DNA of 64,000 nt from Botryllus schlosseri. Taxonomy: Eukaryota. The stretch is from the NCBI GenBank assembly GCA_051294905.1, contig CM119375.1:9920001-9984000 (forward strand), written 5' to 3'. The position numbers and the translations under genes were made by a program. The notes under the pieces were generated by a model. The model did no database searches and was not told the DNA's origin. It saw nothing but the letters and a program-made list of their open reading frames with translations. Positions 22,354 through 40,842 of this stretch are shown here, in pieces (position 1 is the stretch's first letter; every line of letters starts with the position of its first letter).

Positions 22354-22787
22354 ACATAGCCTATTTTGGTTTTAAGTGAAGAGTGTTCCTGAAAAAGTGA
22401 TCGTAGAAATCCGCGGCACCATGTTTAATTCTCGATCGTATATCTCGCGAAACCACGAGAAATCAAAATAACGCCCCACATAAATGAATGCATAGCACAT
22501 GGCCTGAACTGGGATCACACTGATATTAAATCATTGCGAAAGACCAAGAGGATTATCATTTATTGCCTAAACATGGACGAATCAACAATGTATATAAAGT
22601 AAAGGAACATGAAATACGGTACATATTTTTCAACGGAATACACACAATGTAGGGAGCACACAATGTTCGGGATTTATCCTGATAACATGGTATATGATCA
22701 AGTCATCCCAATGGAGTTAAGAAGGAATATGTGAGTGAAGAAATCTTTGTTGAAGAAGTTATATACATTTCCATTGGTCCTGCGTAA

Positions 22788-23135
22788 TCAGCAACAGCCG
22801 AAACAACAGCAGTCCACAGTTTCGACAGCTGTCGACCCGCACGGTACGCAGCAGCACGCAGTCTTACAGCCACAGCAGAAGATTGACTTGAGACACTGCG
22901 AGAAAATCGCATTCGGTAAGATTGTGAGATGAACGCTACATCGAAAGTTTGTTTAAAACATGTTTTGTTTGCGAATGCAATCAATCTTGCCTGGGACTAT
23001 ATGGCATGTAGCCTAAGAGTCGTGCCGTAGGTGTGAATTCCGATATTTCACAATTATCTCTTTTCATCCGCTAGTAGCCTAAATATTACGGAATAATTTT
23101 ACCTTCAAGATTGACTCGCAGATTCCGCAGCACAT
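22788..23135 (-). CDS. Cys-rich micro-protein 1 (46 aa, 16 Cys): MCCGICESILKCLKSIFCCGCKTACCCVPCGSTAVETVDCCCFGCC
   Basis: Exons 23135-23103 (AAG|GTAAAA) and 22895-22788 (TTTTCTCGCAG|TGT ... TGA), phase 0, 207-nt intron. Same exon lengths as paralogue 2, with several third-position differences; AATAAA at 22564-22559. Confidence 0.85.
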
Positions 23136-24903
23136 TTTTTCTTTTTTTATATTGATATTCGTCTGGATCAGACTTGACTAAATATAGTCTAAAACAGGAT
23201 TTAATTGATAACCGAGCTGAAGATGAAAAATATGATGTTTAATCGACTGCTTATATTCGAATCCTATGGATGAAGATTTCGTATTCGTCCACTTCAGGGT
23301 TGTAATCAAGTCACTAGGTTCAGAGTCATCTGCAAATATTAACATTGCTAATTGTAGAAATAGCAACGCTAACCGGCCGCGGTTTGCCATCAAGGGATCC
23401 ATATCGTTTGCATGCTGACTGCATGTCTTCCGAAATCATGCTGCCACTGCGATTAGTTTGTGAGGCCGGGCTTACCATTTTCAGGCATGGTTTCCGAGAA
23501 AACGAATGTTGTTGTTATACATTACAAATTAGTAAGTTGATATTTACAAACCACATGACGTTGGACTAAAGTCGTTCTCAAGTGCCTCCGGAATGCGTTA
23601 ATATTCCAGAAACCTGAATTGTCATCCAAAAACGTGTGTAATAAAGTATGAATATATGAGACAGGCCTATCCGAATATAGGGCTATCGAAATATACGACT
23701 TGAAGGGGCAATGCACTCTAAACACGATGTGGTCTGAAATTACAGATAAAACACGGAGAAAAATCTTGGCCGCAGCCACATTCTTCATAAACACGCAGTG
23801 AAGGAACAGCAGCTGAACGAAAATTCCAACTATCCCCATTCCATGCCAGTTTAGTAAGACATTATATGGTGGTGCGGATGCGAGTCCTCGGTGCTAAACC
23901 CGTTGAAAAATTGCTGGCATGTGCATGATATATCATCATTTGCATTTTCTCAACCAAGTTTCTCGACGCGACCTCCATCATCTAGTGAATCTAGTCACAT
24001 AATTTCTTTAGGTAGTACGTGGTAAGCATATGATGCGTAGTCTACGCATCTGCATTAATTCCCCATCAGATCTGAAGGCACAGCACACAGTACCAGTGGC
24101 GTGCATCCGAACCTCGACCAGTATGGTAATTACTGATTATACAGATGCATTTGTATGATGTATATATTGCAAGTTGTAATGAGTGTCTGTGCTGCTGTAT
24201 CATTATCAAAGTGAGTGAATCATACAATTTGTATGATCTACATCCATTGCCATCAGATCAGCGGGCACAGCACAGTACCGCTAGAGTACAACGAAACCTC
24301 AACCACTATGGCGATTGTACATTTGTATCAGTTTTGGGATCAAGTCGCTACATTCGAGTCACAAGTCATCTCAAGTCATTGCGCTTTTTTTCTCGAGTCA
24401 AGTCAAGTCACAATATAGGTAAAATTTGAATTTTCGAAGTATATTATAGATGATTCAAAGTCATTACATTTTGCTAGCTGTTTAAAGCACAGATTGATTC
24501 GTCATTCATTCTGATTCAAATTATGAATCGTTATAACGAAAAAAAGTTTGCTATACCTTCAAAAAGGCGTTGTATCGCTCACGCATACATAGAACTGCTG
24601 AGGAAATACGTAAGTAACAGTGTAGCTCAAAAGTCTGTAATTATTACCTAAAATGGAGGATCGAATACGAAACTAAAGAAGTAGGAACAAATTGATGATG
24701 CAATACAGCGAATACACCATCCCTCTAAACATCCACGAAATATAATTTAAGCCTGTTCCTGTTGATGAGTATAAGATAAAATCATAAACTATATTCGGTC
24801 GATTTAAATCATAAAAGATGGTTGGTAAAGCTGACCCCTGCGCAACTTCTGCACATGGCAGTCTCAGCATCAGAGATACATTGCTATTAGAATATATACT
24901 ACT

Positions 24904-25214
24904 CGGGACCGAAACAGCACTTCGTCAGGTCCGTCCCAAAACGTCGGTCTTGGGTCCCCATTAAGAAGGGGACTTTTACCAAAACATCAAAGTTAGTAGA
25001 CCGAAATTGAAAACAGCAGATTTTGATATATTTACTCGAAATTTTCGTTTGTTGACTAAAAAAAGGTCATGACTTTGATTTGACTCCCGCATTACCCACT
25101 TTTTACGTAAACTTTATAGTGCTGACTAAAAAAAGGTCATCACTAATACTTTTGGGCCCCCTTCGAGCTCGCTTCCCCAATTTGGGGGTTTGGAATGCGG
25201 CAGTTACGGCCCTG
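24904..25214 (+). mobile_element. Short family B derivative
   Basis: CGGGACCGAAAC ... GTTACGGCCCTG; perfect TSD ATACTACT. Confidence 0.85.
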
Positions 25215-25329
25215 ATACTACTCACTACAATGTTAACTGTAAGCTATGATCATTTCGTTGGCAGTCAACAATGGACGCTATCGTGAACAATCCGAACATA
25301 CACAAGATACAGCGATTCATAGTCGACAC

Positions 25330-25832
25330 CGATTACTTCATGACTTGAGATTGACTCGTAAATTTTGCTCTGAGTCACGAGTCAATCCACATTTCTGAAA
25401 GTCTCAAGTCAAGTCATTTTTGCAAGGTGACTCGAATCTAGTCAAGTCATACGAAAAAGTTGACTCGACTTTGCGCAACCACAGAATTTTTGCAGTCAAC
25501 TGGCGTGGAATGAAGATAGTGAGAATTTTCGTTTAGCTGCAGTTCCTTTACGGCGAATTTCTGAAGAAAATGGCTGTGGATAAAACATTCTTCCCTTCTT
25601 TGAGACCACATCATAATTATAGTGCGGTGCCCTTTTGAATGAAGTCGTATACAGAATGTCTCGAGTCACACGAATTGTTCCAGTTATGAGCAATGACTCA
25701 AGTACGTGCCGAGTCAATTCAGAAAAGCACTGGAGGCGGTGAGTCAGTTCCCATATTCGAGAATTTGACTCGTTTCAAGTGGATGCACGAAACAATTGTG
25801 ACTCATATCTGACTCGGGTCATTACAACCCAG
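25330..25832. repeat. GACTC/GAGTC-rich TE-derived repeat (same family as 55475-56015); a second patch lies at 24330-24420
   Basis: Many GACTCGA / GAGTCAA motifs; end GACTCGGGTCATTACAACCCAG is the reverse complement of the start of the 55475 element. Confidence 0.65.
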
Positions 25833-26399
25833 TTCTAGCTTGTTCAATTTGCTCATAGCGACCTGACCATCCTTCATTCCCGGACTCCATTCTCAAACCC
25901 TCTATCGAAGCTTAATATTTCAACCATTTCATCGTCATCGAACTCTTGGTCTGCTCTCGAGGGGCAGAGGATGCCGTTATATATATATTCTTAATCGAAA
26001 ACGAAATAAAGTTAGCCCGATAGTGTAATTAGGACAAATCTATTCGGGACAACACATTCCAATGAACAATTGTCGAAAGAGGGCCCCCGTGCACAGTAAC
26101 GTTCCTGAGCGTCGAGTTTCGCTTTCAGTGCATACACAATCTACATTGCTATATTGTACTACGCTGAGTCTGGTTAAGTTTCACATGGTAAAGGTCGTAC
26201 GCGCGAGAGATTTTCTTTCAAAAAGAACCGAAAGAGAAAATGAATTTGTTCTCTTTCGGCACAACCCCGCATTTACCCTCTAGATCTAGTAGGCAGTGTA
26301 CGATGGTCGGGTTTCATGTCTATATTTGAGCGGTTGGGAGTAAGTTTGATGCCTGCCCTACTAGTATTCTGCGTGCGGTTGTTCATTTGAGCTCCTCAG

Positions 26400-27359
26400 T
26401 AGGGATGGTGTGAACCTCTGAAAGGTTCAGGTTCGTGTGAACGCGAACCTTTTTGAAAGGTTCTGTGTGAACACGAACGTGAACCTCATGACGTCAGATG
26501 ACGTCATATTGCTAAAATTCCAGTCCTATCTTTTCATGAAGTGACAGGCTTTGTACACGATACCTAGCGACGACTCGGGCCACATAATTCACAATACTGA
26601 AGTCCATATTAGCGTTTTAAACCGTCGCCAAATTTATCAACTGAGGCAATTAATCATATAATAATCCCATAAATTAAATATCTTCCGACGCTTTACCTAC
26701 AATTTCGACGAGGACTTGCCAGGGAATATAAGCTTGCGACCTAAAAGTCTAGGCCAGACCGGACAATGCATTCGGTGTCTGATTATTGCTACATTGATAT
26801 TGAGCAGAGTGTAAAACGGGTTTCTATACTTGCTCTTGAAATTTTACTACAAGTTATACAGCTGTAGCCAACAGCTCAATCACACGGATTTGGTTCCAAT
26901 GATACAGTAAACCTGCTATATTTGTTGCATCAGAAAACGATATCAATCTCATTTATTGGTCGGGTAAGCATCATTCGCTGACTCCATGTAGTTTTCGCTC
27001 TTGATGTCGTGTGATTGCGGGCTAATATCGCAGCAGAGAGTCACTAAATTTTCACAACCGGAAAGCTGGATATTTCGAGCAAACTTTTACAACAAAGCAA
27101 GTAAAGTTTTTGAGATTGTCAATGGGCATGCTCGTTTTGTGTTGATTTTTGGTGCTACCAGCATCATGCACATAGAGTGACCCGCAGTTGAAATGCAATA
27201 AATTCAAACCAAAGAGGTATTCATGAAGTGAAAATTGTAATATATGAAAAAAGTTCACAGTGCAGAACCTACCAAGGTTCTGTTGTGAACGCGAACCTCT
27301 AAATTTCCGAGGTTCACATACAGAACGCGAACGTGAACCTCACGTTCACACCATCCCTA
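26400..27359. mobile_element. TAGGGATGG-ended non-autonomous hAT-like element
   Basis: TAGGGATGGTGTGAAC ... GTTCACACCATCCCTA; perfect TSD CTCCTCAG; GAACGCGAAC/GTGAACCT subterminal repeats. Confidence 0.9.
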
Positions 27360-28655
27360 CTCCTCAGTACCGAGATGACTGCGATTTTATTTTTTTGAAA
27401 TGCTCAGAACTGAAAGTCATCTGAAGAAGGGCAAATGAATGTGATATATATATAGAGAGAGACCGCATCCCGAAAATCGACGATTTGCTATTATATATGC
27501 TACAATGTCTGTGTCGCGTTCATGGATATATCCCTGGTCGCTGTTCACAAATCTGAACGGAATAATCGCCGCCAGACAGAACTCTTGATTACCGGACCAC
27601 GATCTCACATATCGACATCGTACATACACTCCCATTTTATCTAATCTTGAATTACTTTTCCGTCAACGAGCATGCCTCTTATTTTAGTGTTCAGTCCAAC
27701 GTGAGTGTCTGATTTAATAAAACGACACCAAATCGCTTCGACACCATCATATCCTTTCATTATGTCGCAATTTCATGATGTTTTGAACTGATAAGATTTC
27801 TAAATGAATAAATAACGGACGAGGTTATTTAAATATATTATTCGATTTCGTGGAATCTATACTATATTAATAGCGTATAGCTTGAAAGCGATGTTTTTGC
27901 TTGATGCGAAAGGGCATTTATATGACAATACGCGAACATTTGTTCGAATCATGCGATGTTGCTTCTCGATTAAGCTCGCCACAGTTTAACAAACCCGGAA
28001 AAGCGTTTTAGATGTCAATCTCCATGAACCTTTTCATCCGACTTGGCCCGCCATTAATTAAAGCGAATGCGTGGGTCGCGAGCTCGACCAGCATCTCTCT
28101 CTGGTGATGTCACCTCGACTCGCATACCTTGCGCTCGTGATGACGCATTCGTTGGTTACGTGTCAATGCGTCTCAAGCACGCGCACTTTGTATGCTATAT
28201 CAACCGCTGGTCATTGTGCAATGATTCTTCTTGGAATGTATATGCCCCCCGAAGTTTCGAAAGTAACACTGCCGGTACGTACCGCTTTCTGGTATCACTT
28301 TCGATACGAAGTCGTCGCCATATGCGAAACTTTTACAATAGTCAAACATCAGCTATACTTTCATCCGGGATTTGGAATTATTGCAAAATGCCGTAACGGT
28401 TATAATTTATTGCCCAAACATCAGATAATACAGTGCATATATAGTAGAAATGTACATGAAGCATAAAGTTTTGTTAAAACATTCAACCAACTGTTTATAC
28501 GGAACAAGTGAAACGCAAACGTAATATTTTGAATCCATTCCGGCGTGCATATAATAATGTCACATCCGACTACAAAATTAAGAGTTTTTCGTTGAAGATG
28601 GGTATGTCAAATTGATCTTCACCATGAAGAAGCTAAAATTCCGTTCCACCCGTCG

Positions 28656-29328
28656 TCAGCAACAGCAGCAGCAACAGCAGTCTGCAGCTTCGGTAGCTGC
28701 CGTGCCGCCGGGTACGCAGCAGCACGCAGATTTACAACCACAGCAAAAGATGCACTTGAGACACTGCGACAATAAACGTTCGGTAAGCTTGTGAGATTAC
28801 AGATGGTTCAATTGTTCAACACATAGACATATATAATATTTAGGATCAAAGTCGAATTCCCCGTGCATATGGAAGTCGAAGTAGGATTTGGAATGGTGGT
28901 GCAATTTCCGCACGAAATTCGTTTTGAATGTGAATTCTGAAAATAAATGGCCAATTTGTACTGAAATCGTTATTTGGATTTGAAAATTGTAATACCGATC
29001 ATTACAACAGTCCAGTGGCCGGTGTCAATTTCTAATTTCAATGGATTCACAAATCATTTCATAAACCCATCCCATTGCGCTTATCAAAGCACGTAACCTT
29101 CGCCCGACAAAATACCAGTTGGCTACGACACCTCTGGAACCGATTGTGCCTCTCTGCAAGCGCTATGCAGAGGATATGATGCATGGAGCTATAAAAAAGG
29201 TGTTCCGGGGAATACTTCGTAGCGTAAACAATGCCAATGAATCACAATTTGTAACTGTTCAACTTCTTAGCATAGTCAATCCACAACATTTTTACCTTCA
29301 AGAAACCCTTGCAAATTTCACAGCACAT
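28656..29328 (-). CDS. Cys-rich micro-protein 2 (46 aa, 18 Cys): MCCEICKGFLKCLKCIFCCGCKSACCCVPGGTAATEAADCCCCCCC
   Basis: Exons 29328-29296 (AAG|GTAAAA) and 28763-28656 (TTGTCGCAG|TGT ... TGA), 532-nt intron. Colinear with gene 1, including branch region TCTCACAA.CTTACCGAA and the 3' UTR end; AATAAA at 28411-28406. Confidence 0.85.
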
Positions 29329-30218
29329 TCTGCTTTCGGGAGGTAATGTAGCGGATCAGCAATAACTCAAACTAGGTTAAATCCGGATTCGGTCAATTAT
29401 CGAGCTGAAAAAAATATCGTAAATAATATCTAGTATTTTTGTAAGGAATCTAAGCTGCGATTCCGGTTCTTCGAATCAACCAGCGGATTCCAATGTTGAT
29501 TTGTCTAATGCCCCTCCAGCTGCCTTACTTTACTCACGCCCCGGTTCTGTAGCATTGCGTTGGTATAAACATTGCCGAAAGTTGTGTAATTTCAAGCCGC
29601 TTCTGGTAGCGCTAGCATAATACTACTTACTAGCGACCGTTGCTTTGTGCTGACATATAAACAATAAATCACCGAAAATACTCTATTCACTGAACAATCG
29701 TTTTGTCCGCGACACAATATCCTCTAAGCTTCGTATACTGGATGGACCGTTGGTCTTATTATTGACGACTGGTACTTGGGGTTATGATACCAATCCACTA
29801 AAATCGTAGGACCATGGATAATGCCGGAAGGAGCAAAAGTTGTCTTCCACAGTTTTGCGCTCATAGATATGTCCCCATGAAGATGAAACCATTGAACTAT
29901 TTGCTTGTCACTGTCGGTAATGTTTGATTTAAGTCACGCAGTACAGGGCCAGGTTCTCCTGTTATGCAATTCTGAATGTTTCTAGTAAAATTGCTGTAAG
30001 TTTTGTATAGGAGATATTCTAATCAGTGCAGAACATCGCCAATACAATGAACGGATAGGAATTAGGAAGGTGGCGAAACGTTAATCACAGTCTAGCCAGA
30101 TCCTACGATAACTTATCTAAAGCTCAGGTCTAACTTCTATAACTCTCTAACTATGTTCGGTCGGAGTCATCGGATCATTCCCAGCACTCGTTGGATTTTA
30201 TTATTATTGGGTCATTAG

Positions 30219-31078
30219 TAGGGCGATTTTTTTGACATGTCCAAAAAAATTCAAAATTTGGTCAAAATTGTAGCTTTAGGTGAAAAAATGTCTAAATTGT
30301 TTACAAAGTTGAAACTTTTTTGCAACCTGCATTTCGTTTGTATCGTAGATTTTGCACCGTCGGTGAACTTATCATTTGACATTTTACAGCTTGTAATGTA
30401 GCCTACTTTAGGCCTACCGCTGTGGATGCCTCATTGTCTGCTCATTGTGAATCATAAACATTCAAATGAAACAAATAGGTTGATATGGTGTTATGATCAA
30501 CGTACCGCAATATCCCAACTGAAGCAAGACGGCATGGGCATTGCATGGTTCTTATATCAAGAAGCGGATGATGAAAATTGTGATGTAGACACCATTGCCA
30601 AAATGAAGCAACACGCTTTGTCACCAGCAGTGTATGTACATAATGCACAACTTCAGTGTTTTCAGCCAACAACTGCTGTTGTAGGACGTTTTTTCCTCTC
30701 ATTCCTGGCAAGCTATTTAGTAAGGACAGCCACTTTCTATACGGGAAAGTAGGAAATTATCTTTCTATATAGACTACAACAAATTTTAATTATTTTTACC
30801 ATAATGCGAAATGTAACTACTGGAATTCTTCATAGGGCCAGATTTCGTTAAAATATAGCTTTTTCATGTAAACATTTTTCAGTTTTTGAGGAAAAAAGTT
30901 TTTTTCAGGCCAAACTACTTCCCAAGGACAGACAGCTCCAATCAGAAATGAAGATAAGTAGTGCAATTCTTACATTATGTGGGAAACACCTAATTTGCAT
31001 ACGTTAGGTCAAATTTGCTTAAAATTAAGATTTTTAAGGTCGAAACCTTCTGTTTTTTAGGTAAAAAAAATCGCCCTA
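30219..31078. mobile_element. TAGGGCGATTTTTTT-ended non-autonomous element
   Basis: TAGGGCGATTTTTTT ... AAAAAAAATCGCCCTA; perfect TSD GTCATTAG. Confidence 0.9.
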
Positions 31079-32134
31079 GTCATTAGGATATGTTGGGATC
31101 AGCCTTGAGAATCCACTATCGTATTAGCTTTTGACTGACATGAATTTCGCTCTCTATAATCGCTTACATACCTGTATCGCCACTGTAAATTTTTGACACT
31201 TTGGTTTCCCTTTATAGGTTTACCATATTTGAGAAGGCTAAATAACGAACAATTTACTGATATTACTTAAGTGGATCAATGGACCAAATTTCCTACTTAA
31301 TTAGAAGTACCGAGGTACGAGCTATTCCAAAACTAATTTCTAATTTTCAAAATCCAAAGTGCCTTAATACTTGGTAAGTAGAAATGGAAGTAGTCTTAAA
31401 ACTATTTGCATAAGTGCAAGTATTTAAAAAGGTAGGCTACTCGTTACTTCCTGCCTGTGCTAATGGGCAGCTATACTTGGAACAATGGAAAGATGAATAC
31501 TGCGCTGAGTATAGAGAGGCACTACTATCGGCTGTTCCAGACGTCAGTGTTGGTTCATGCACCAACAGCTCAGCAGTACACACATGTGTAACATTTATAG
31601 GGTGACGTTGGAAATGAAGAGCAATTCAGTGCACAACCAGCAGTACTAATCCCTCAATCACATTGCTACCTCCAAGTTGGAGGCTCCAACGGCAGGGTTT
31701 ACCTTTACGCGGAGTGGACCCACGCGATATGTAGGCTACCCAGGACGCTGTATATACCTAAACGGTCACTGGGTATCAGTAGAGTATAATTATGACGGAA
31801 AGTATTTGGTAGCTCGGACAGAAATGAGGTAAGTTCTGTAATCCATCTGGGTGCACACTGCACATATGAGTCCTTCTGAAAGTCTAACATGAAACGCGTC
31901 GTAGTGCCATATATTTCAATAAAAGGTCTCTACGGTAGTGAAGCCACGTTGGCCGGGAAAAATAAGGTGACAGTTTGGTATTGCCACTAACGGCATGGAC
32001 GAGGACAAAATCGTTGGCAACCTCAAAAAATAAAAGCACATCACATCACGACAGCTGTATTAAATGTTCATCAGAAATATACAAAACGCCAAGAAGGGGA
32101 CCACAGTGTTCATAAGTAACATGGAAGGTAAGCT

Positions 32135-35100
32135 TTAATCGTCATCATCCCAACAGCAGCAGCAGCAGCATTTACAACAAGCGTAACAGCACGCTACTTC
32201 GGCACAACAAGGGCAGCATGTGAAAAAGGCAGTTCCACAGCAGCAGCAGCAGACGGACTTGAAGCACTAAAAGCAAAGCGTCCATTACTAATGCTTACTT
32301 TTCACTCGATGGTGGTTAACTAATCGACAAGATTTGTCAGACTACGTGTGACGTCACATGGAGTGACGGCACACCACAATACGGGCATGTGGAATAAGCG
32401 ATTATACCAGTGGTTCCCAACCTTTTTCCACTCACGTACCGTTTCGAGGTTTTATGCAGTGCTCGCGTACCACCTACATAAGTTACGTTCGCCGAAGGCG
32501 GTCAAAAATAGATTCCCGCCATTTATGACGTCATAATCACGTATTTGATCTATGTGAGCGAGGTGTAAAAACAAAACTAGACATTATCGGCTAGGGTTGA
32601 TGAATTAATGGAATTTGTTTTTCACCACCAGTCACAAGAAGAACAACATAATGAAATTACAACAAACAGCAAAAGTCAATTTATTTAATGCGACGGCTGC
32701 GTTTGTTTATATTTTCCACTAGCTGGTCGATGCGTGGCATACGTTTTCTCAGAAGCGTAACAGCACTTCGTCAGTCCTACCCAAAACAACGCTGGTCTTG
32801 GGCCCCATAGCATAGGGTGATCAACCAAATTCGGGGGGTTGACCCCAGACAGCCCATCAGGTTAGTCGTGTTCGCCGTGACTTATCACCGACATTTATTG
32901 TACCGAGAGACGCATTACTCCGCCTAAACGCGCAAAGCGCGAAAATTTTCGAAAATTCATGATTGAATTGGTAAATATGATCGGGAATTGCATATATGTT
33001 ACTATCAATTTTTTTATCCTCCCTGCTCACGTAATCAGATTTCCCGTTAGAGCCGAATAAGGTGTCTTGGAAACGGTAGGGCTCGCAAATAATAATTTAA
33101 CATATTCGGGCGATATAATAACTCCATCACACGATGTTGTTTCTTGACCTCCTGTCTGCTATGTCAAAAGATATTGAAATCGCCCCACCGTACTAAACTA
33201 GAAGACGCACACGATTTCAAAGAGGTATTTCGTCACTGGCTATTAAATATTCCTTGTGGGTAGGCATTTGTTTTGCGAGGTTCAGATTTCCAGGACAGGA
33301 ACATTCGGAGCCAGTAATTTAGGCGCCTATGGACATTAAACATGTAGGCTTATGTATATATATTGAAGTTTTCGGTCAGAATAAGGGCAGTTGTTTTCGG
33401 CCCAAGTTTTTTTGCCGCCGATCGTTCTGGCACACTTCTCGGAGTCGGAACTTAATTTATGCTTATTTAAGAATTGATTTTGGGCCCCTTCAAGCTCCCC
33501 CCCCCAGTTGGGGGGTTTGAGGTGTGGCAGTTACAGTCTTGCGTTTTCTCACAGCGCATCGAAAGTCATGCACGGGCACAACAAGTCAGTTTCGTTTTTT
33601 AGACGAGGATGAAAATCCTTACTCGCTCTTCTACGTAGAAGGGAAAATTAGCAGATGGGGAATAGCCTGAGAAGCTAGCGTCTAGTGCGAGGAGGCCTTG
33701 CTAAGCCAGAAGTTTATTGGAGAACAATATTTGTGTTTCGGCTTTGCTGACTGGTCCACCTGAACTAATACCTCCCTTCGGTCTAAAGAAAAACAGAATC
33801 TACTCGCGTACCACCTGGAAGACCTTCGCGTACCACTAGTGGTACGCGTACCACAGGTTGGGAACCACTGGATTATACGATACTAATACACCTAATAGGA
33901 AAGAAGCAATGGACTTATACCGCTGATCTGTGAACATCACACTCTATATCAGTGGTTCTCAAGCTTTTTCACTGTGGGAGCCATTTTATGAACCTCAACT
34001 CTGTCGGGAGCCGCATGATGGCACGAATAACGTAATTTATTGAGAATAGAAAAATATCATCAAAAATGGTATCAACGAAATGGTGTACGGCTAAAATAGC
34101 GACGGCCTTAATAGCGACGGCCAAAACACCGACTGGCCACAACAGCGACGGCCATAACAGCGACGGCCAAAACCGCGATTGGCTCAAACAGCGACGGCCA
34201 AAACAAATACGACAATTTCCCCAGACGACACTGTGACAGCGGGCACTCCCCATACGGACAACTTCCGAAACGACGTTACCCAGCCACGTCCCTTCACCGA
34301 TGGTATACCGAGGTATACCCTTCACCGTTGAAGCCGATTGCGGATGATTTACAATTTACATTCTTCCAGATAGTAAATAGATAGTGATCACCACAGATTT
34401 AGCGTCACAACATGTTTATTGAGACTTAATCCACAATCTTTCTGAGTTCCGAGAGCATGTGAATTGAGTTTGGATGAACAAGGCGTGACGCTAAATCTGT
34501 GGTGATCACTATCTATTTTGCAACTTAGTGCGAAACTTGAAATTGAATTTGATTTTTCACAAGTTTGTCATAACGAGGTTTCATCGTGGAGGAAGCTGTG
34601 CACAAGAGCTGTTTCAGATGACGATCAGTCAATCGGTTGCGATATTTGCTTTTGATCCTCACTAATTTGCTGAAAAGGGCTTCACATACATAGGTTGAAC
34701 CGAACATGCAGGCATTCTTCGATGCGTTAGCTATCAGGTTGGGGTATTTTTCTTCAGGAACAGCACCCCAAAATTCAAGGAGTCCATTGCTTTGAAACAA
34801 CAGTCGCAATTCTATATCGGACTGCAAGTCCAGCAGTTCCATCTGAAAAATATCAGGGGCAGTGGCGGCATCTACTGCCATTGGGTTTGAAAATATATTC
34901 ATCAGGGGTACGGAATGATGCATTCCCTCTATTCGACGTTTAAACCCGTCAATCAAGGTACTAATAACCTGGTCATATGTTTTGAATGATCCATTCTGTC
35001 GGTGGTTTGAAAGCGTTACAAAATGTGTCGTAACACCCTCCTCTAGGTGCTTTCTCCAAAGACACAATTTCTCAATGAAACCAGACACTGTCCCGTACCA

Positions 35101-38100
35101 GGCGTGACAGAGCTTGTTATTTCCTTGTAAGTTCCGATTTAGTGACGACAGGTGTGAGGTAATATCCACCATGAACGCCAAGTCAGCAACCCAGTGTTCG
35201 TTTCCCAACTGAGGGATGTCTTTCTTTCCTTCGACAAATATTTTAATCTCAGGAAGTAGCGCGTAAAATCTTTTGAGGCATGCAGCTCGGCTTAGCCATC
35301 GTACAGCGGTGAACATGATCAAGTCTCCATGGTCAGCATCAATATCGGTGAGAAAAGCCTTGAATTTTCGATGGTTAAGTGCGTTTGCTCGAATCCAATT
35401 TACGGTCGATATTACTATATCTGTCACATTGGACATCTTTAATGATTTAGCAACAAGACTTTCCTGGTGTATAATGCAGTGTTGCCAAGTCACAGCGTCA
35501 AGATTCTGTTCAGCACGCCATTTGTTGACGAGTCCTTGAAGACCTAGATTTTTGCCGAGCATTGCTGGGCAGCCATCTGTCGCCAATGAATATAATTTCG
35601 ATGGGTCTAAATGCGCTTCTTGAAGAGTAGCATGAAATTCACGAAACATGTCGGTTCCCTTCGTTGTGCCATGAATAGATCGCAAAGTAAGAAACTCCTC
35701 GCAAATCTTGAAATCTGGCATGACTCCCCGGATGAATACAGCTAATTGCTCTATGTCGGTAATGTCGTTAGTGCTGTCAAGAGCAAGCGAGTAGTAAGAA
35801 AAATCTTGCGACTTGTGAATAAGTTGCTCATGCAGATCTTGGGATATGCAATCGACACGACGCGTTACTGTATCATTGCTAAGCTGCAATTTTTTAGCTT
35901 TCTGCTGAATGGCAGGAGAACAATTGTCTTCGGTAAACAAAACAATAGCCTGCTTCGTAATTTCGCCATCAGAATATGGCTTCATATTGCAGGCCAATAG
36001 ATGACTGATCTTATATGATGTTATTGTTACCTCTTCGGGTTCTTTTTTTTTTAAAAACATTTTTCCTTGTTTGCTACGCTCTGCTTTCAGACATTCTAAC
36101 TTCCGTTTCCTTGATTCACCTTGATAGACGTCGTATTTTCCCGCATGTGTTTTATAATGCCTCTTAACGTTGAAAGATTTTACACCGTTTATTATTATAG
36201 GGCACAGAAGGCATTTCGCTTTGCCGTTTTCCTCAATTTGAAAATACGCCTCTTCCCATTCACTTTGAAAGGCCCGATTTTCTTGCACAAGGGTGCGAGA
36301 TTTCTTTGCAGGTTGATCTGAACCTGACATTATCATTGAACCAAAGTCTCCGATATTTTCTAACGCTATCAAGATCAAAGCAAAGAGTAAGAAAATAAAG
36401 TACCTGCAGTTACCCCAAACGTTGATTGTCTTATTGACCGAGTCTCTTGTCACCCGTATTCTAATATGAGCCGCCGTCTCGAGCGAAATAAACTTCGCCC
36501 GTCTCATTACAGACACCTGATTAGGCTTAGGTCAGACGGTCAGAGCCTTCAGTAAAGCAGTAAAGGTTCGGATTTAAAGCCTACCGAAATTACTATCGGT
36601 AATGTTACGTCACAACCCGTACAACTTGTATTACGTAGGATTCTATTGTGATCAGGGAATGACCTTCGCGTCAGTAAACGTGAACATAAACGTACATTTG
36701 TTGTGTTGAAGGCGCGATTTATTTATGATCATGAATAATTAGAATTTCCGTAGAAGCATCAATGATTTCACATCGTTAGTGAGAGCCGCACGGAGAGCAG
36801 TCGAGAGCCGCATGCGGCTCGGAGAGCCGCGGTTGAGAATCACTGCTCTATATTTATAGTAACATGATTCTTTACATGTTATAGCTGTTCATCGATTGGG
36901 AAAACATTTTGGGATGCCGATATTATGACGTAATTTAATTGCAGATATCAAACTGAAAGCATATGATAACTTGGATGCTCAACAATGTTTTACTTAGACC
37001 AAACACATTGTAGACGACATAAATAATTCGCTATCGACGACGCTTCCCACGGTGCGTGGACAAATGCGCATTCGACAGAAGAGCACGCGACACTTGAGCA
37101 TAGCGACTTTTCCTAACTTCGGCCACGCGTTGGCATAGAGACACAGTAGCATGGCGACACTTACACACGGTGACTTTTTATCATGACGACGGCTGAGCAT
37201 AGGTACGCATGCGCTTGCGCATGGGTACGCATGAGCAATTGAGCATGGTGACACATGAGCATGGGGTCAAATAAGCATGGTGACACATGAGCATTGGGAC
37301 TCATCGGCATGCCAAAGTTACACGTGCGCATGGGAACACATGAGCATTGAGCATGCGACATTACAGCATGCTACACTTGAGCACATCTGCATGTGGTAAA
37401 ATGCGCACGGGCACACATCAGCATGGTGATAGCAGCATGGTAATCAGCATGTGACACATTAGCATGCTATATTTCAGCATGGCGACTCATCAACATGGTG
37501 ACAGGTGAACACGGTGACAAGTGAGCATGCGGCAGATACGCGTGCGATATTTCAGCATGCGACGCTTGAGCACATCTGCGTGGGGTGGGGAGTGGGGACA
37601 TATCGGCATAATATTGGTAATTACATATATTGCAATTAATTTTTAACCCTCTCTCAGCCTTCGTGATCAGATTTACCGGCAGAGCTGCGGGAGGTGGTAC
37701 GTTTCAAATAGCAGGCACAGGACTATTTCGCGCCTGCCCCCTAGGTGCCTATATTGATGCTTTCGGCCAACATGCGGCGGTAATTTTTGGCTAAGGTTTT
37801 ATTAGGTGACACACACAAGGTCGCAAGTTGGCCGAAACCTCGAAAGTCCTGGTGTGACGTGGAACGATAATGGCCGGTATCGAAATGTATATTTTTTAAT
37901 GAATGATGCATATTTTTTGGGGGGCGCAAAGGGTACCCAATCCATATTAAAAAAAATTAATTTCAATAAATCGTGCCAGGCGCGAAGAAAATTGTGAAGT
38001 TGTGTCAATTTCCCACAAAATACTCTATAATTTATGTTGATTTGAAAAATAATTTTGCGCCCGTTTTGATCTAGCCCTACCGAATTTGTCACCCCCTTGC

Positions 38101-40074
38101 AGCCTGGCGAACAGCCAGAACCGCCACGTGGCTGCTATGTTACTTGAGCTATACCCAGCACCGTAACTGCCGCACCCCAAACCCCCCAATTGGGGGGGGC
38201 CCGAGCTCGAAGGGGGCCCAAAATTATTTCGTGAATTAGCATAAATCATAGAGTATTTTTTGAAAATTTATGCAAATTTTTCAAAATTTTTCGCGCTGCG
38301 CGCGATTTCATGTAGCCGTTTCTCTATATTATAGGGTATTGGGCCATTACCGCGCCACGACCAACCATGACATACAATCAAGTTTTAGGCCATATAACAT
38401 GCGACTCCAAGAAGTGTGCCAGAACGATCGGCAGCGAGAAAAGCTTGGCCGAAAAGGTCTATGCCCTTATGCAGACCGAAGACCTCGTTATATAGGCTAT
38501 ACAAAATGCCTATAGGTTTAATTGTCCATAGGCGCCTAAATGACTGGCACCAAATGTTCCTGTCTTTGCAATCTGAACCTCACAAGACAAATACCATCCC
38601 GCTGGGAAAAATTTTATTCCAGTGAAGAAATACCAATTTGAAATCGTGTGCGTCTCTTAGTTTAGAAGCCTACGTTTGGGCGATTCTATATTTTTTGATA
38701 TAGCAGACTGGAAGTCACGAATTAACATCATGTAACGAAGTCATATCAACGGGTCCGTCCGCCCGAAGATGTTTAATCATTATTTACGGGCCCTCCCGTT
38801 TTCAAGACACTTCACTCAGCTCTACCGGTAAATCTAATTACGTGAGTAGAGAGGACAATAAATTGATAGCATACTATATATGCAATTCCCGATCATACTG
38901 ACCGATGAAATCATGAATTCTAGAAATTTTGCGCGCTTCGCGCGCTCAGGCGGCAAAAGCCGATTCACCAAACATACTCCCAATGAAAATGATGAATAGT
39001 GGTAAACAGTGTATCGCCGGAGGGGGGGTCTAGGACTATAACCCTATGGGGGGCCCCAGACCAAAGTTTTGGGGGGGGCTGACGAAGTGCTGTTACGGGC
39101 CTGGCTATACCCAAACTAGCACTGTAAAGATGTGTAGCCTAGCTATTGATTTGATGGTATCGAAGAGCGAGGATTTTAAATACAATAAGGTTGTTAGTAT
39201 GACGAATTGCATCAACCACTGTTGTGTGTATTTTACACCCTTAATTTATAGAAGTAGGACGCTCTACCAATATACTGCATGCTTCTTATTGGTAGCACAT
39301 ACAGCTTTAAGCTGTAATTAAGGTGTAACTCGAGTACGGCTACCCAAACTCGCACTGCTAAGATGTATGACAATTGATTTTATGGTAACGAAGAGCGAAG
39401 ATCTTAAAGGCAGGAAGGGTGTTATTCAGACGAATTGAATCACCAGTCTGGCGTGTATTAGAACGCAAAATGCGACTGTATAATTGGGCTAACTAATCAG
39501 GGACATGAATATTTAGCAACTGCGCAATGTACAGTATAACCGCAGTGATATAATCAACTATATTCAGACTTGCACAAACTACTGGATTTTCAAAAAGCGC
39601 AACTAGAACTAGAACTAGAACTACTCAATTATTAAAACTGGCATTCCAGCCCGACAGTCTTGCTAAGCATTTTTGAATGCTTTTATGTACTCTATGTCTA
39701 TAATATATGGAGGTGTTCCCGCTCGCAGTGTCGGGTGATGTCGTATCATCTCTAATTATAGCCTCAACAGGCCGTGACCAGAATACGTTGAATACGCAAT
39801 ACGCAATATTTGTAGACAGCAAATAAGGGTTACTCGGGGAGAATCGGGATCCGACACTTACGCTTCCAGTAGCAAATGCATACCATTAGAGACCGTGCGA
39901 TGCGATGTACAAAACGCTGACATTAATGGAGCAGACATCAAGTATGATCCATTCCCAGCTTGCAAACTCATATATTCAAAAAACTGTTTCTCTTGTGAAC
40001 GCTTCTGTTGCAGATGTTGATGCTATAATCGTGCCTATACTTACCCCGAAAATTGCAGAAAATATAAAACACAT
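32135..40074 (-). CDS. Cys-rich micro-protein 3 (53 aa, 21 Cys): MCFIFSAIFG-CFKSVCCCCCGTAFFTCCPCCAEVACCYACCKCCCCCCWDDDD
   Basis: Exon 2 at 32266-32135 (TTTGCTTTTAG|TGC ... TAA). Exon 1 assigned to 40074-40045 (ATG ... GGG|GTAAGT, phase 0) by resemblance to MCCGICESILK|CLKS. The 7.8-kb intron is filled with transposons. Exon 2 is more certain than the exon-1 link. Confidence 0.7.
32408..33870. mobile_element. Family A hAT derivative with nested family B element
   Basis: CAGTGGTTCCCAACC ... GGTTGGGAACCACTG; perfect TSD GATTATAC. Confidence 0.9.
32750..33541 (+). mobile_element. Family B element nested in family A
   Basis: CAGAAGCGTAACAGCACTTCGTCAG ... GGCAGTTACAGTCTTG; perfect TSD CGTTTTCT. 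Confidence 0.88.
34093..34204 (+). repeat. 15-bp-period tandem array (consensus AAAACAGCGACGGCC) inside the hAT
   Basis: About 7 imperfect units: AAATAGCGACGGCC, TTAATAGCGACGGCC, ACAACAGCGACGGCC, ATAACAGCGACGGCC, CAAACAGCGACGGCC and others. Confidence 0.8.
34375..34518. repeat. Perfect 34-bp inverted repeat (76-nt loop) immediately 3' of the transposase stop codon
   Basis: AAATAGATAGTGATCACCACAGATTTAGCGTCAC (34375-34408) is the exact reverse complement of 34485-34518. Confidence 0.9.
34525..36336 (-). CDS. hAT transposase, 603 aa from MIMSG (frame open upstream to 36516); related to GTF2IRD2/EPM2AIP1/ZBED5-type proteins
   Basis: BED-type finger KCLLC...KRHYKTH; catalytic D (LALDST), D (LATDGCPAM), CxxH (HCIIHQ), RWLS, E (FGSTYVCEALFS); C-terminal dimerisation region; no internal stops. 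Confidence 0.95.
   Translation of the reverse strand: MIMSGSDQPAKKSRTLVQENRAFQSEWEEAYFQIEENGKAKCLLCPIIINGVKSFNVKRHYKTHAGKYDVYQGESRKRKLECLKAERSKQGKMFLKKKEPEEVTITSYKISHLLACNMKPYSDGEITKQAIVLFTEDNCSPAIQQKAKKLQLSNDTVTRRVDCISQDLHEQLIHKSQDFSYYSLALDSTNDITDIEQLAVFIRGVMPDFKICEEFLTLRSIHGTTKGTDMFREFHATLQEAHLDPSKLYSLATDGCPAMLGKNLGLQGLVNKWRAEQNLDAVTWQHCIIHQESLVAKSLKMSNVTDIVISTVNWIRANALNHRKFKAFLTDIDADHGDLIMFTAVRWLSRAACLKRFYALLPEIKIFVEGKKDIPQLGNEHWVADLAFMVDITSHLSSLNRNLQGNNKLCHAWYGTVSGFIEKLCLWRKHLEEGVTTHFVTLSNHRQNGSFKTYDQVISTLIDGFKRRIEGMHHSVPLMNIFSNPMAVDAATAPDIFQMELLDLQSDIELRLLFQSNGLLEFWGAVPEEKYPNLIANASKNACMFGSTYVCEALFSKLVRIKSKYRNRLTDRHLKQLLCTASSTMKPRYDKLVKNQIQFQVSH
37085..37580 (+). repeat. Degenerate 15-16-bp minisatellite (GGTGACACATGAGCAT-like)
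   Basis: Recurring GACACTTGAGCAT, GGTGACACATGAGCAT and CAGCATG units; explains the spurious ORFs here. Confidence 0.7.
38156..39103 (-). mobile_element. Family B element, full length, reverse orientation
   Basis: CAGCACCGTAAC ... TGACGAAGTGCTGTTACGGGCCTG; perfect TSD GCTATACC. Confidence 0.9.
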
Positions 40075-40842
40075 TTCGTCTCGTCGTATGTCCGCAGCTA
40101 AATACAGCAGAAATTTAAATTGTTTCGTTATCCTTGAGTTATCCTGGAAATGATATTAGTGAAGTAAAATGTCTGTCTGTCATATCACGCAGTAATGTAC
40201 ATTCGTAGTCTATTCGTCAACGATTTCCAATCAACTATTGATTAACAATTGTTTACATAGAAAGGGATACAGCAACAAACGATATGTCTCAGATGAAGTG
40301 TACATTGTACAACAGTGCAGTTTGCAGCGTGACGGATTTAAACTCGGCCAATGCAGATGAGGTGACGATACGATATGATTTTGGCGAAAGTATGATACGA
40401 TGTTTCAGCATATGTTCAATAACAATGGATGCGTAACATGACTGTTTTGCTGAACACACCGCGTCTACAAAAACAAATACTCAGCCACCCTACCAAATCT
40501 TCATCTTGGCTATGGCTATAGTGCCTTCCTGACTGCGACACTGTATAAAACGTTTGCGTCACGAGGTGTTCCCGATTTTACATCTACAACGCATGTTCTT
40601 AATACGCCTACGAGCAGTGGAAGATGGATGTTAATTCGAAATTCTATCGACCGTAAGTTGAAGTTGGGCGCTCAGTTTATTCGCCGCGGGTCCGTGTCCA
40701 GTGTCCACGTTTCGTACAAGAACAGCACAAAATGCATCAATACTGAATATTCCTTGCTTAGAAAAATTGTATCTGCGTTACTGAATCTGAAAATTTGGCT
40801 TCAATTCACCCCGTACTTCCGGCCTGAAACAACAATGTAGGC

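Follow-up and report, generated by a model that had tools for sequence, protein, structure and literature searches.

Within a 64,000-nucleotide (nt) stretch of the Botryllus schlosseri genome (assembly GCA_051294905.1, contig CM119375.1, positions 9,920,001 to 9,984,000; hereafter the window, in whose coordinates all positions are given) we find three small genes on the minus strand that encode micro-proteins of 46-53 amino acids (aa) dominated by cysteine. A prediction made from the letters of this DNA alone had placed three two-exon, phase-0 genes here, and our models agree with it in coordinates and in translated products. All three introns start with GTAA, end in a pyrimidine tract and AG, and leave codons undivided, with 11 codons ahead of them in genes 1 and 2 and 10 in gene 3. 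Exon 1 of gene 1 (23216-23103) comprises a 5′ untranslated region (UTR; 23216-23136) without upstream ATG and 11 codons of coding sequence (CDS; 23135-23103) opening Met-Cys-Cys. The predicted phase-0 intron (23102-22896; 207 nt, GT..AG, donor GTAAAA from 23102) is followed by exon 2 (22895-22559), with 35 codons and TGA at 22895-22788, a 3′ UTR and AATAAA at 22564-22559. Gene 2 has the same layout: exon 1 at 29404-29296 (5′ UTR 29404-29329; 11 codons at 29328-29296), an RNA-supported phase-0 GT..AG intron of 532 nt (29295-28764) and exon 2 at 28763-28406 (35 codons and TGA at 28763-28656, 3′ UTR, AATAAA 28411-28406). Exon 1 of gene 3 (40097-40045) consists of a short 5′ UTR and 10 codons opening Met-Cys-Phe (40074-40045). 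An RNA-supported phase-0 GT..AG intron of 7778 nt (40044-32267) separates it from exon 2 (32266-31572), which holds 43 codons and TAA at 32266-32135 and, with an uncertain end, a 3′ UTR some 200-560 nt long.

The products contain 16 Cys in 46 aa (gene 1), 18 in 46 (gene 2) and 21 in 53 (gene 3), or 35-40%, and Ile, Leu, Phe and Val stand between the Cys runs of all three. Each peptide is Cys-rich from residue 2 and has one Pro and no Gln. Those of genes 1 and 2 finish in a Cys run, with Asp before the run and none after it, while gene 3 ends in six consecutive Cys and then, at the extreme C-terminus, Trp-Asp-Asp-Asp-Asp. A six-frame scan of the window for at least 9 Cys per 25 aa returned these three exons alone. 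None of 20 shuffles gave any, and relaxing the scan brought no further poly-Cys family members to light in the 64 kb. All three peptides open Met-Cys (23135-23130, 29328-29323 and 40074-40069), and removal of Met would leave an N-terminal Cys. Such an exposed residue could be S-acylated or could make the peptide a target of the oxygen- or nitric oxide (NO)-dependent Cys N-degron pathway, as in RGS4/5/16.

RNA was aligned over 28450-34000, spanning the whole of gene 2 and exon 2 of gene 3, using three runs of assembled contigs (X8, X25 and X27) and one raw RNA-seq run (X18). The gene 2 joint 28763/29296, which skips 532 nt bounded by CT..AC on the plus strand, is present in an X25 contig of depth 447, in an X27 contig and in 3 X18 reads, and RNA depth over the intron is 0-5. 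At gene 3, 18 X18 reads and one X8 contig stop matching the window at 32267. Reads that extend past this point run on with 30 letters forming the reverse complement of exon 1, ATG included, and the junction string observed is letter-for-letter identical to that predicted. Because reads ending at the acceptor continue as exon 1, the 7.8-kb intron of gene 3 is confirmed. Its exon 2 is represented by contigs at 31572-32267 (X25), 31771-32267 (X27) and 31697-32218 (X8), with X18 depth of 35-47 per strand bin. Two of the splice joints that the original prediction put forward for checking, 29296/28763 (gene 2) and 40045/32266 (gene 3), were therefore found in RNA. For gene 1, eight RNA contig runs contain 0.52-0.54 of the words sampled from 22560-23200, a share that fits its exons minus the 207-nt intron. 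At 28680, 32151 and 32237 several RNA contigs leave the window inside TGC/TGT runs and enter unrelated CAG/GCA-rich sequence; these exits either come from de Bruijn cross-joining of the codon repeats or mark additional poly-Cys paralogues at other genomic sites.

The 5′ end of gene 2 adds to the picture of the locus that the original prediction had drawn, in that its transcript is trans-spliced to a spliced leader (SL). Twelve X18 reads depart from the genome at 29406 and read, in mRNA sense, ACATGGG, GATTGGAGTATTTGGTTGTATTA, AG|CTCGAT. An upstream cis exon was considered for this loose end and rejected: the sequence is absent from the window and turned out to be the SL, the reads carrying the complete 25-nt leader, final AG included, joined at 29406/29405. 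We take ACATGGG to be the end of the template-switch oligonucleotide, so that the gene 2 reads reach the capped 5′ end. The acceptor AG lies at 29405-29406 on the minus strand (tttttttcAG then CTCGA). The same 25-nt SL is listed for Botryllus schlosseri, Halocynthia roretzi, Styela plicata, Boltenia, Herdmania and Polyandrocarpa (PMC3795323), and no copy of the SL gene lies within the window. This leader is the one used by stolidobranch ascidians and so places the genome among them; a resemblance to Mst84D-like sperm-tail CGP proteins of insects, considered at first, was dropped for that reason. In gene 1 a putative acceptor AG at 23217-23218 (minus strand; ttcatcttcAG then CTCGG) aligns to that of gene 2. 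The TTCAG|CTCG block in which it sits (gene 1: 23216-23225) is the sole well-conserved upstream element common to the two genes, and is best read as a trans-splice acceptor and not a promoter initiator, for gene 1 by its alignment with gene 2. For gene 3 a candidate acceptor AG is predicted at 40099-40098 (minus strand; tgtatttAG then CTGCGG), 23 nt 5′ of the ATG. In the trans-spliced gene 2 mRNA no AUG precedes that of the Cys open reading frame (ORF). The same holds for each predicted SL-mRNA, and for genes 1 and 3 the Cys ORF is also the longest early one. An operon of the three genes was ruled out because they lie 3.5-5.5 kb apart.

Repeat detection between genes 1 and 2 yields matches of 122 nt at 82% and 62 nt at 71%, which comprise the two coding exons, a handful of bases at the splice sites and nothing else; their introns and UTRs align poorly, save for acceptor, branch-point and poly(A)-signal blocks. 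The two CDSs are 81% identical with no indels and preserve 15 of the 16 Cys of gene 1, reproducing the third-position differences and the lack of indels that had first been put forward in support of this frame. By the Nei-Gojobori method the synonymous divergence (dS) is 0.54 and the nonsynonymous divergence (dN) 0.17, giving a dN/dS of 0.31 (Fisher p 0.016). Among the single-nucleotide polymorphisms (SNPs) listed, all five that are coding (28758, 28698, 32195, 32207 and 32222) are synonymous third-position changes. The synonymous share of possible single-base changes in these exons is 18%, and five out of five gives P ~2e-4. The 3′ UTR of gene 3 has 15 SNPs and 3 indels among those listed. 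These patterns support purifying selection on the three ORFs as coding sequence.

Several points weigh against so straightforward a picture. Conservation is judged from paralogues and from polymorphism, and the overall count of coding SNPs may exceed the five listed. A 1-nt deletion at 28725 lies within the gene 2 CDS in 4 of 16 X18 reads, and could be a frameshift allele, reads of a paralogue elsewhere or sequencing error in a GCGTGCTGC context. Splicing of gene 1 is supported indirectly, by the word share, the joint 23103/22895 itself having had no direct sighting. It is also conceivable that the transcripts are real and the Cys ORFs yield no functional peptide, being by-products of a TGC/TGT-rich, microsatellite-like non-coding RNA. 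Exon 2 is partly (TGC)n-like, contigs cross-join there (loose ends 28680 and 32237), and the peptides have no homologue in the protein libraries searched. However, TGC and TGT are intermixed and form no pure repeat, the Cys ORF stands at the first AUG of each mRNA, paralogue conservation is limited to the CDS, with no indels and the low dN/dS given above, and the listed coding SNPs are uniformly synonymous against the SNPs and indels of the gene 3 3′ UTR. We therefore regard the non-coding explanation as extremely unlikely, and hold with high confidence that the genes are real and coding.

On sequence grounds genes 1 and 2 are clear paralogues, and gene 3 is a probable, more distant, third member. 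Local alignment of gene 3 against genes 1 and 2 gives z = 3.1 and 2.1, respectively, and its first 26 residues against gene 1 give z = 4.7. This likeness beyond composition is modest, and the paralogy of gene 3 therefore rests mainly on intron position and phase, on linkage and on the exon 2 start common to the genes, C-[LF]-K-[SC]-[IV].

Within the reach of our searches the family is undescribed, as had been proposed. Pfam hmmscan returned no family up to E 10, whether the query was the exon 2 part or the whole peptide, with the proviso that HMMER composition filters may mask weak matches. A word-index search of 5.8 billion clusters gave no candidates for the full-length gene 1 product or for exon 2 of gene 3, an HMMER profile built from the three exon 2 peptides had no match at E 0.001 among 1.84 billion representatives, and a profile search of PDB was likewise empty. 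Rfam gave no match over the window. Short, compositionally biased queries do poorly in such searches, so these null results are weaker evidence than usual. An exact-sequence look-up in public assemblies did not return genes 2 and 3, and the genes therefore appear unannotated. Literature searches returned no papers on the peptide motifs and nothing relevant on ascidian Cys-rich micro-peptides.

Neighbours in the ESM Atlas were of a compositional kind. For gene 1 they are SCYGR, KRTAP, LCE and CYSRT1 clusters at 0.53-0.76 (below 0.8), and for the C-terminal part of gene 3 the top named cluster is CYSTM (0.61), followed by hepatitis E virus (HEV) ORF3, CYSRT1, PLAC8 and metallothionein, all weak. 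The gene 1 neighbours, the top ones at 0.59-0.76, raise the prospect of intracellular disulphide cross-linkers that harden a specialised cell or matrix, like mammalian KRTAP, SCYGR or late-cornified-envelope proteins. KRTAP, SCYGR, LCE and CYSRT1 proteins have no signal peptide, as was originally predicted for the three peptides too, and the abundance of gene 2 in one run (the contig of depth 447) would suit a structural product. We nevertheless consider this very unlikely. All of the Atlas scores fall below 0.8, a range that shuffled sequences also reach, and Pfam gives no KRTAP, Keratin_B2 or LCE match. The mammalian proteins are alike in Cys-rich composition alone; they are longer, repeat-based and belong to vertebrate skin appendages, whereas the peptides described here are far shorter and lack the typical Gly/Ser/Pro/Tyr-rich repeats.

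A second alternative is a lineage-specific set of new metallothionein-like peptides binding Cd, Zn or Cu (or Fe in stolidobranchs), either cytosolic or at a membrane. The ascidian metallothioneins CroMT1, HroMT1/2 and BscMT1 come from the same animal group, are close in length (38-45 against 46-53 aa), are rich in Cys (27-31%) and tend to occur in multiple copies, and the de novo origin of metallothionein domains is a recurrent event in chordates (PMC8476144). Plant CDT1 peptides of the CYSTM type, which are short and very Cys-rich, are reported to limit Cd uptake and to give Cd and Cu tolerance (PMC2804304), and a metallothionein cluster is among the weak Atlas neighbours. Set against this is the arrangement of the Cys residues. 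Ascidian and thaliacean metallothioneins have 12 Cys, mostly as CxC, in the pattern [CxC]x5[CxC]x2Cx2Cx2[CxC]x4[CxC]x3-6CC (PMC8476144), and a regular expression for it matches none of the three peptides, which bears out their original separation from CxC metallothioneins. Each peptide instead has 1-2 CxC motifs, with most of its 16-21 Cys in runs of CC to C7, and 8-13 aromatic or aliphatic residues, with many Ile, Leu, Phe, Val, Tyr and Trp. Asn and His are absent; the tunicate study gives a K/N ratio for its metallothioneins (PMC8476144). Pfam returns no metallothionein match. Moreover, the Cys residues of CYSPD proteins are probably acylated and hence unavailable to metals, since an acylated Cys cannot chelate metal (PMC10840359). 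Metal binding as the principal function therefore seems to us unlikely.

The original prediction had left S-acylation, metal binding and disulphide cross-linking side by side. The reading that we place first, tentatively, is that the main mode of action is that of an S-acylated membrane anchor. It is put first because of the analogy with CYSTM/CYSPD proteins, for which palmitoylation has been demonstrated experimentally (PMC10840359). Yeast Cpp1-3, members of this family, are palmitoylated and are freed from membranes by hydroxylamine; they are independent of GET or EMC tail-anchor insertion, and palmitoylation persists without the Cys nearest the cytosol (PMC10840359). The same work showed that the CYSTM Cys patch is palmitoylated and acts as a membrane anchor, rather than as a transmembrane helix (PMC10840359). 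The three peptides have a grand average of hydropathy of 1.1-1.2. Residues 2-20 of gene 3 are hydrophobic (Kyte-Doolittle 1.99; Wimley-White -4.3 kcal), and on a helical wheel of positions 1-22 of genes 1 and 2 all charges fall within 220-300 degrees, with Cys, Ile, Leu and Phe opposite. Dense Cys beside hydrophobic segments is the classic context of S-acylation by zDHHC enzymes. The closest named Atlas clusters to the C-terminus of gene 3, CYSTM and after it the palmitoylated HEV ORF3, are in line with this reading, though as weak matches.

Under this scheme synthesis in the cytosol would be followed by recruitment of the peptides to membranes through a hydrophobic or amphipathic N-terminal stretch, which in genes 1 and 2 would be the Met-Cys-Cys start with charges on one helical face and in gene 3 the 19-residue hydrophobic stretch. 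The zDHHC acyltransferases would then S-acylate the Cys runs many times, and the lipid would hold the peptides on the cytosolic leaflet, as experiments have shown for yeast CYSTM/CYSPD proteins and their C-terminal Cys patch. Their role at the membrane could be in stress or metal tolerance, in membrane-domain organisation or in thiol buffering. Taken as a whole, mechanism included, the proposal that these micro-proteins are free-standing cysteine strings, S-acylated at many sites and held on the cytosolic leaflet, is a plausible one to which we give somewhat less than an even chance.

Several considerations count against the S-acylation proposal. Translation of the peptides and their acylation are predictions; Cys runs this dense could instead bind metals or form disulphides; and gene 3 could be a truly membrane-inserted peptide, not a lipid-anchored one. 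The Atlas scores of 0.55-0.76 lie under a meaningful level. An AlphaFold2 model of gene 3 built without an alignment shows a Cys-rich helix at residues 34-48 with a predicted local distance difference test (pLDDT) score of ~55-60; overall pLDDT is 53, a low confidence, and the model thus hints at a C-terminal helix no more than weakly.

The same helix bears on ancestry. The CYSTM module is a helix at the extreme C-terminus in which 3-4 of the 5-6 Cys are consecutive and after which an acidic residue follows, and the proteins that carry it have an N-terminal cytoplasmic beta-strand element, a variable linker and usually a Pro/Gln-rich head, totalling 60-150 aa (PMC2804304). Gene 3 could be a truncated and strongly diverged true member of CYSTM that has lost this head, in which case the other two genes would share that descent. 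Its predicted Cys-rich helix, six Cys and Trp-Asp-Asp-Asp-Asp match the CYSTM hallmark in form, CYSTM is the top named Atlas cluster for this part of the peptide, and Ciona appears in the CYSTM species list. Yet PF12734 is unmatched at E up to 10 by exon 2 or full-length peptides, the HMMER profile search of 1.84 billion proteins is empty, and the Atlas score of 0.61 is a lead at most. In addition, the strand, linker and Pro/Gln head are absent from peptides that at 46-53 aa fall short of the CYSTM size range, and in genes 1 and 2, which finish in Cys, the acidic residue precedes the patch. The original prediction had likewise noted a CYSTM-like C-terminus in gene 3 beside a missing CYSTM N-terminus, in agreement with the published definition (PMC2804304). 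We regard true CYSTM descent as distinctly improbable, and it concerns ancestry and so is compatible with the S-acylation mechanism. As judged from the peptides, the cluster is not assigned to CYSTM because the head and strand are absent, there is no profile match and genes 1 and 2 end in Cys.

A more far-reaching version of the S-acylation proposal is that of a tunicate-specific, possibly de novo family of free-standing cysteine strings whose mature form, with up to 16-21 acyl chains per ~50 residues, would be lipid for the most part, acting at the cytosolic leaflet as mobile membrane-domain organisers or as acyl or thiol buffers. This we consider rather doubtful. Were it so, the Met-Cys start could tie the stability of the peptides to oxygen or NO via an N-terminal-Cys degron.

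The long intron of gene 3 contains an uninterrupted 663-codon hAT transposase ORF at 34525-36516 on the minus strand. Its product has the C-terminal dimerisation domain of hAT transposases (E 2.7e-09) and weakly matches a zinc finger, and this hAT element may have been recently active. Flanking the ORF, at 34074-34226, a 46-nt direct-repeat unit is present in six copies that overlap, with spacings of 15 and 31 nt. Elsewhere in the intron, at 37068-37586, lie three copies of a 47-nt direct repeat that are 70-85% identical, at spacings of 283 and 189 nt. RNA contigs heap up at 30310-31050, 32356-32541, 33100-33470 and 33658-34000, in intergenic and intronic sequence, with summed depth of 10^3-10^4 and many internal joints, which suggests highly expressed dispersed repeats, like short interspersed elements or miniature inverted-repeat transposable elements, unrelated to the Cys genes.

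Micro-proteins of fewer than 60 aa that are split by an intron slip past ORF-based annotation, and the three genes described here are expressed, spliced and under selection, yet absent from the protein libraries searched. They merit entry in the gene set of this ascidian. Should the peptides prove to be S-acylated many times over, nature would offer no more extreme example of a protein reduced almost to a palmitoylation module. The way in which zDHHC enzymes deal with Cys runs could then be studied on a clean substrate, with a bearing on the role of the Cys patch in the widespread CYSTM/CYSPD proteins. The cysteine-string class, if true, would consist of S-acylation substrates without an attached functional domain. 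If the peptides bind metal instead, they would add an unrelated type of thionein to the tunicates, a group already used to study the de novo origin of metallothioneins. Taken together, we see the finding as an annotation gain and an experimental lead, and not as new biology: small Cys-patch, probably lipid-anchored micro-proteins of a stress type.

Among known systems, the CYSTM/CYSPD family (PF12734; yeast Cpp1-3, plant PCC1 and CDT1, human CYSTM1) offers small proteins that are made in the cytosol without a signal peptide. In form, gene 3 resembles them in its extreme C-terminal hydrophobic stretch with a consecutive Cys patch and then an acidic residue. The family differs in that its module has 5-6 Cys, against 16-21 spread through the whole peptide here. 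Palmitoylated Cys clusters also serve as membrane anchors at the N-terminus of HEV ORF3, which is palmitoylated, and in RGS4/16, where Cys2 and Cys12 sit on an amphipathic helix. Genes 1 and 2 are similar to RGS4/16 in that residues 2, 3, 6 and 12, within a stretch predicted to be amphipathic, are Cys. The cysteine string of DNAJC5/CSP-alpha is alike in that dense Cys runs flanked by hydrophobic residues form a multi-palmitoylation anchor (PMC10903463). In DNAJC5/CSP-alpha and the RGS proteins, however, the Cys cluster is appended to a J or RGS domain, whereas in the three Botryllus peptides the cluster is approximately the whole protein.

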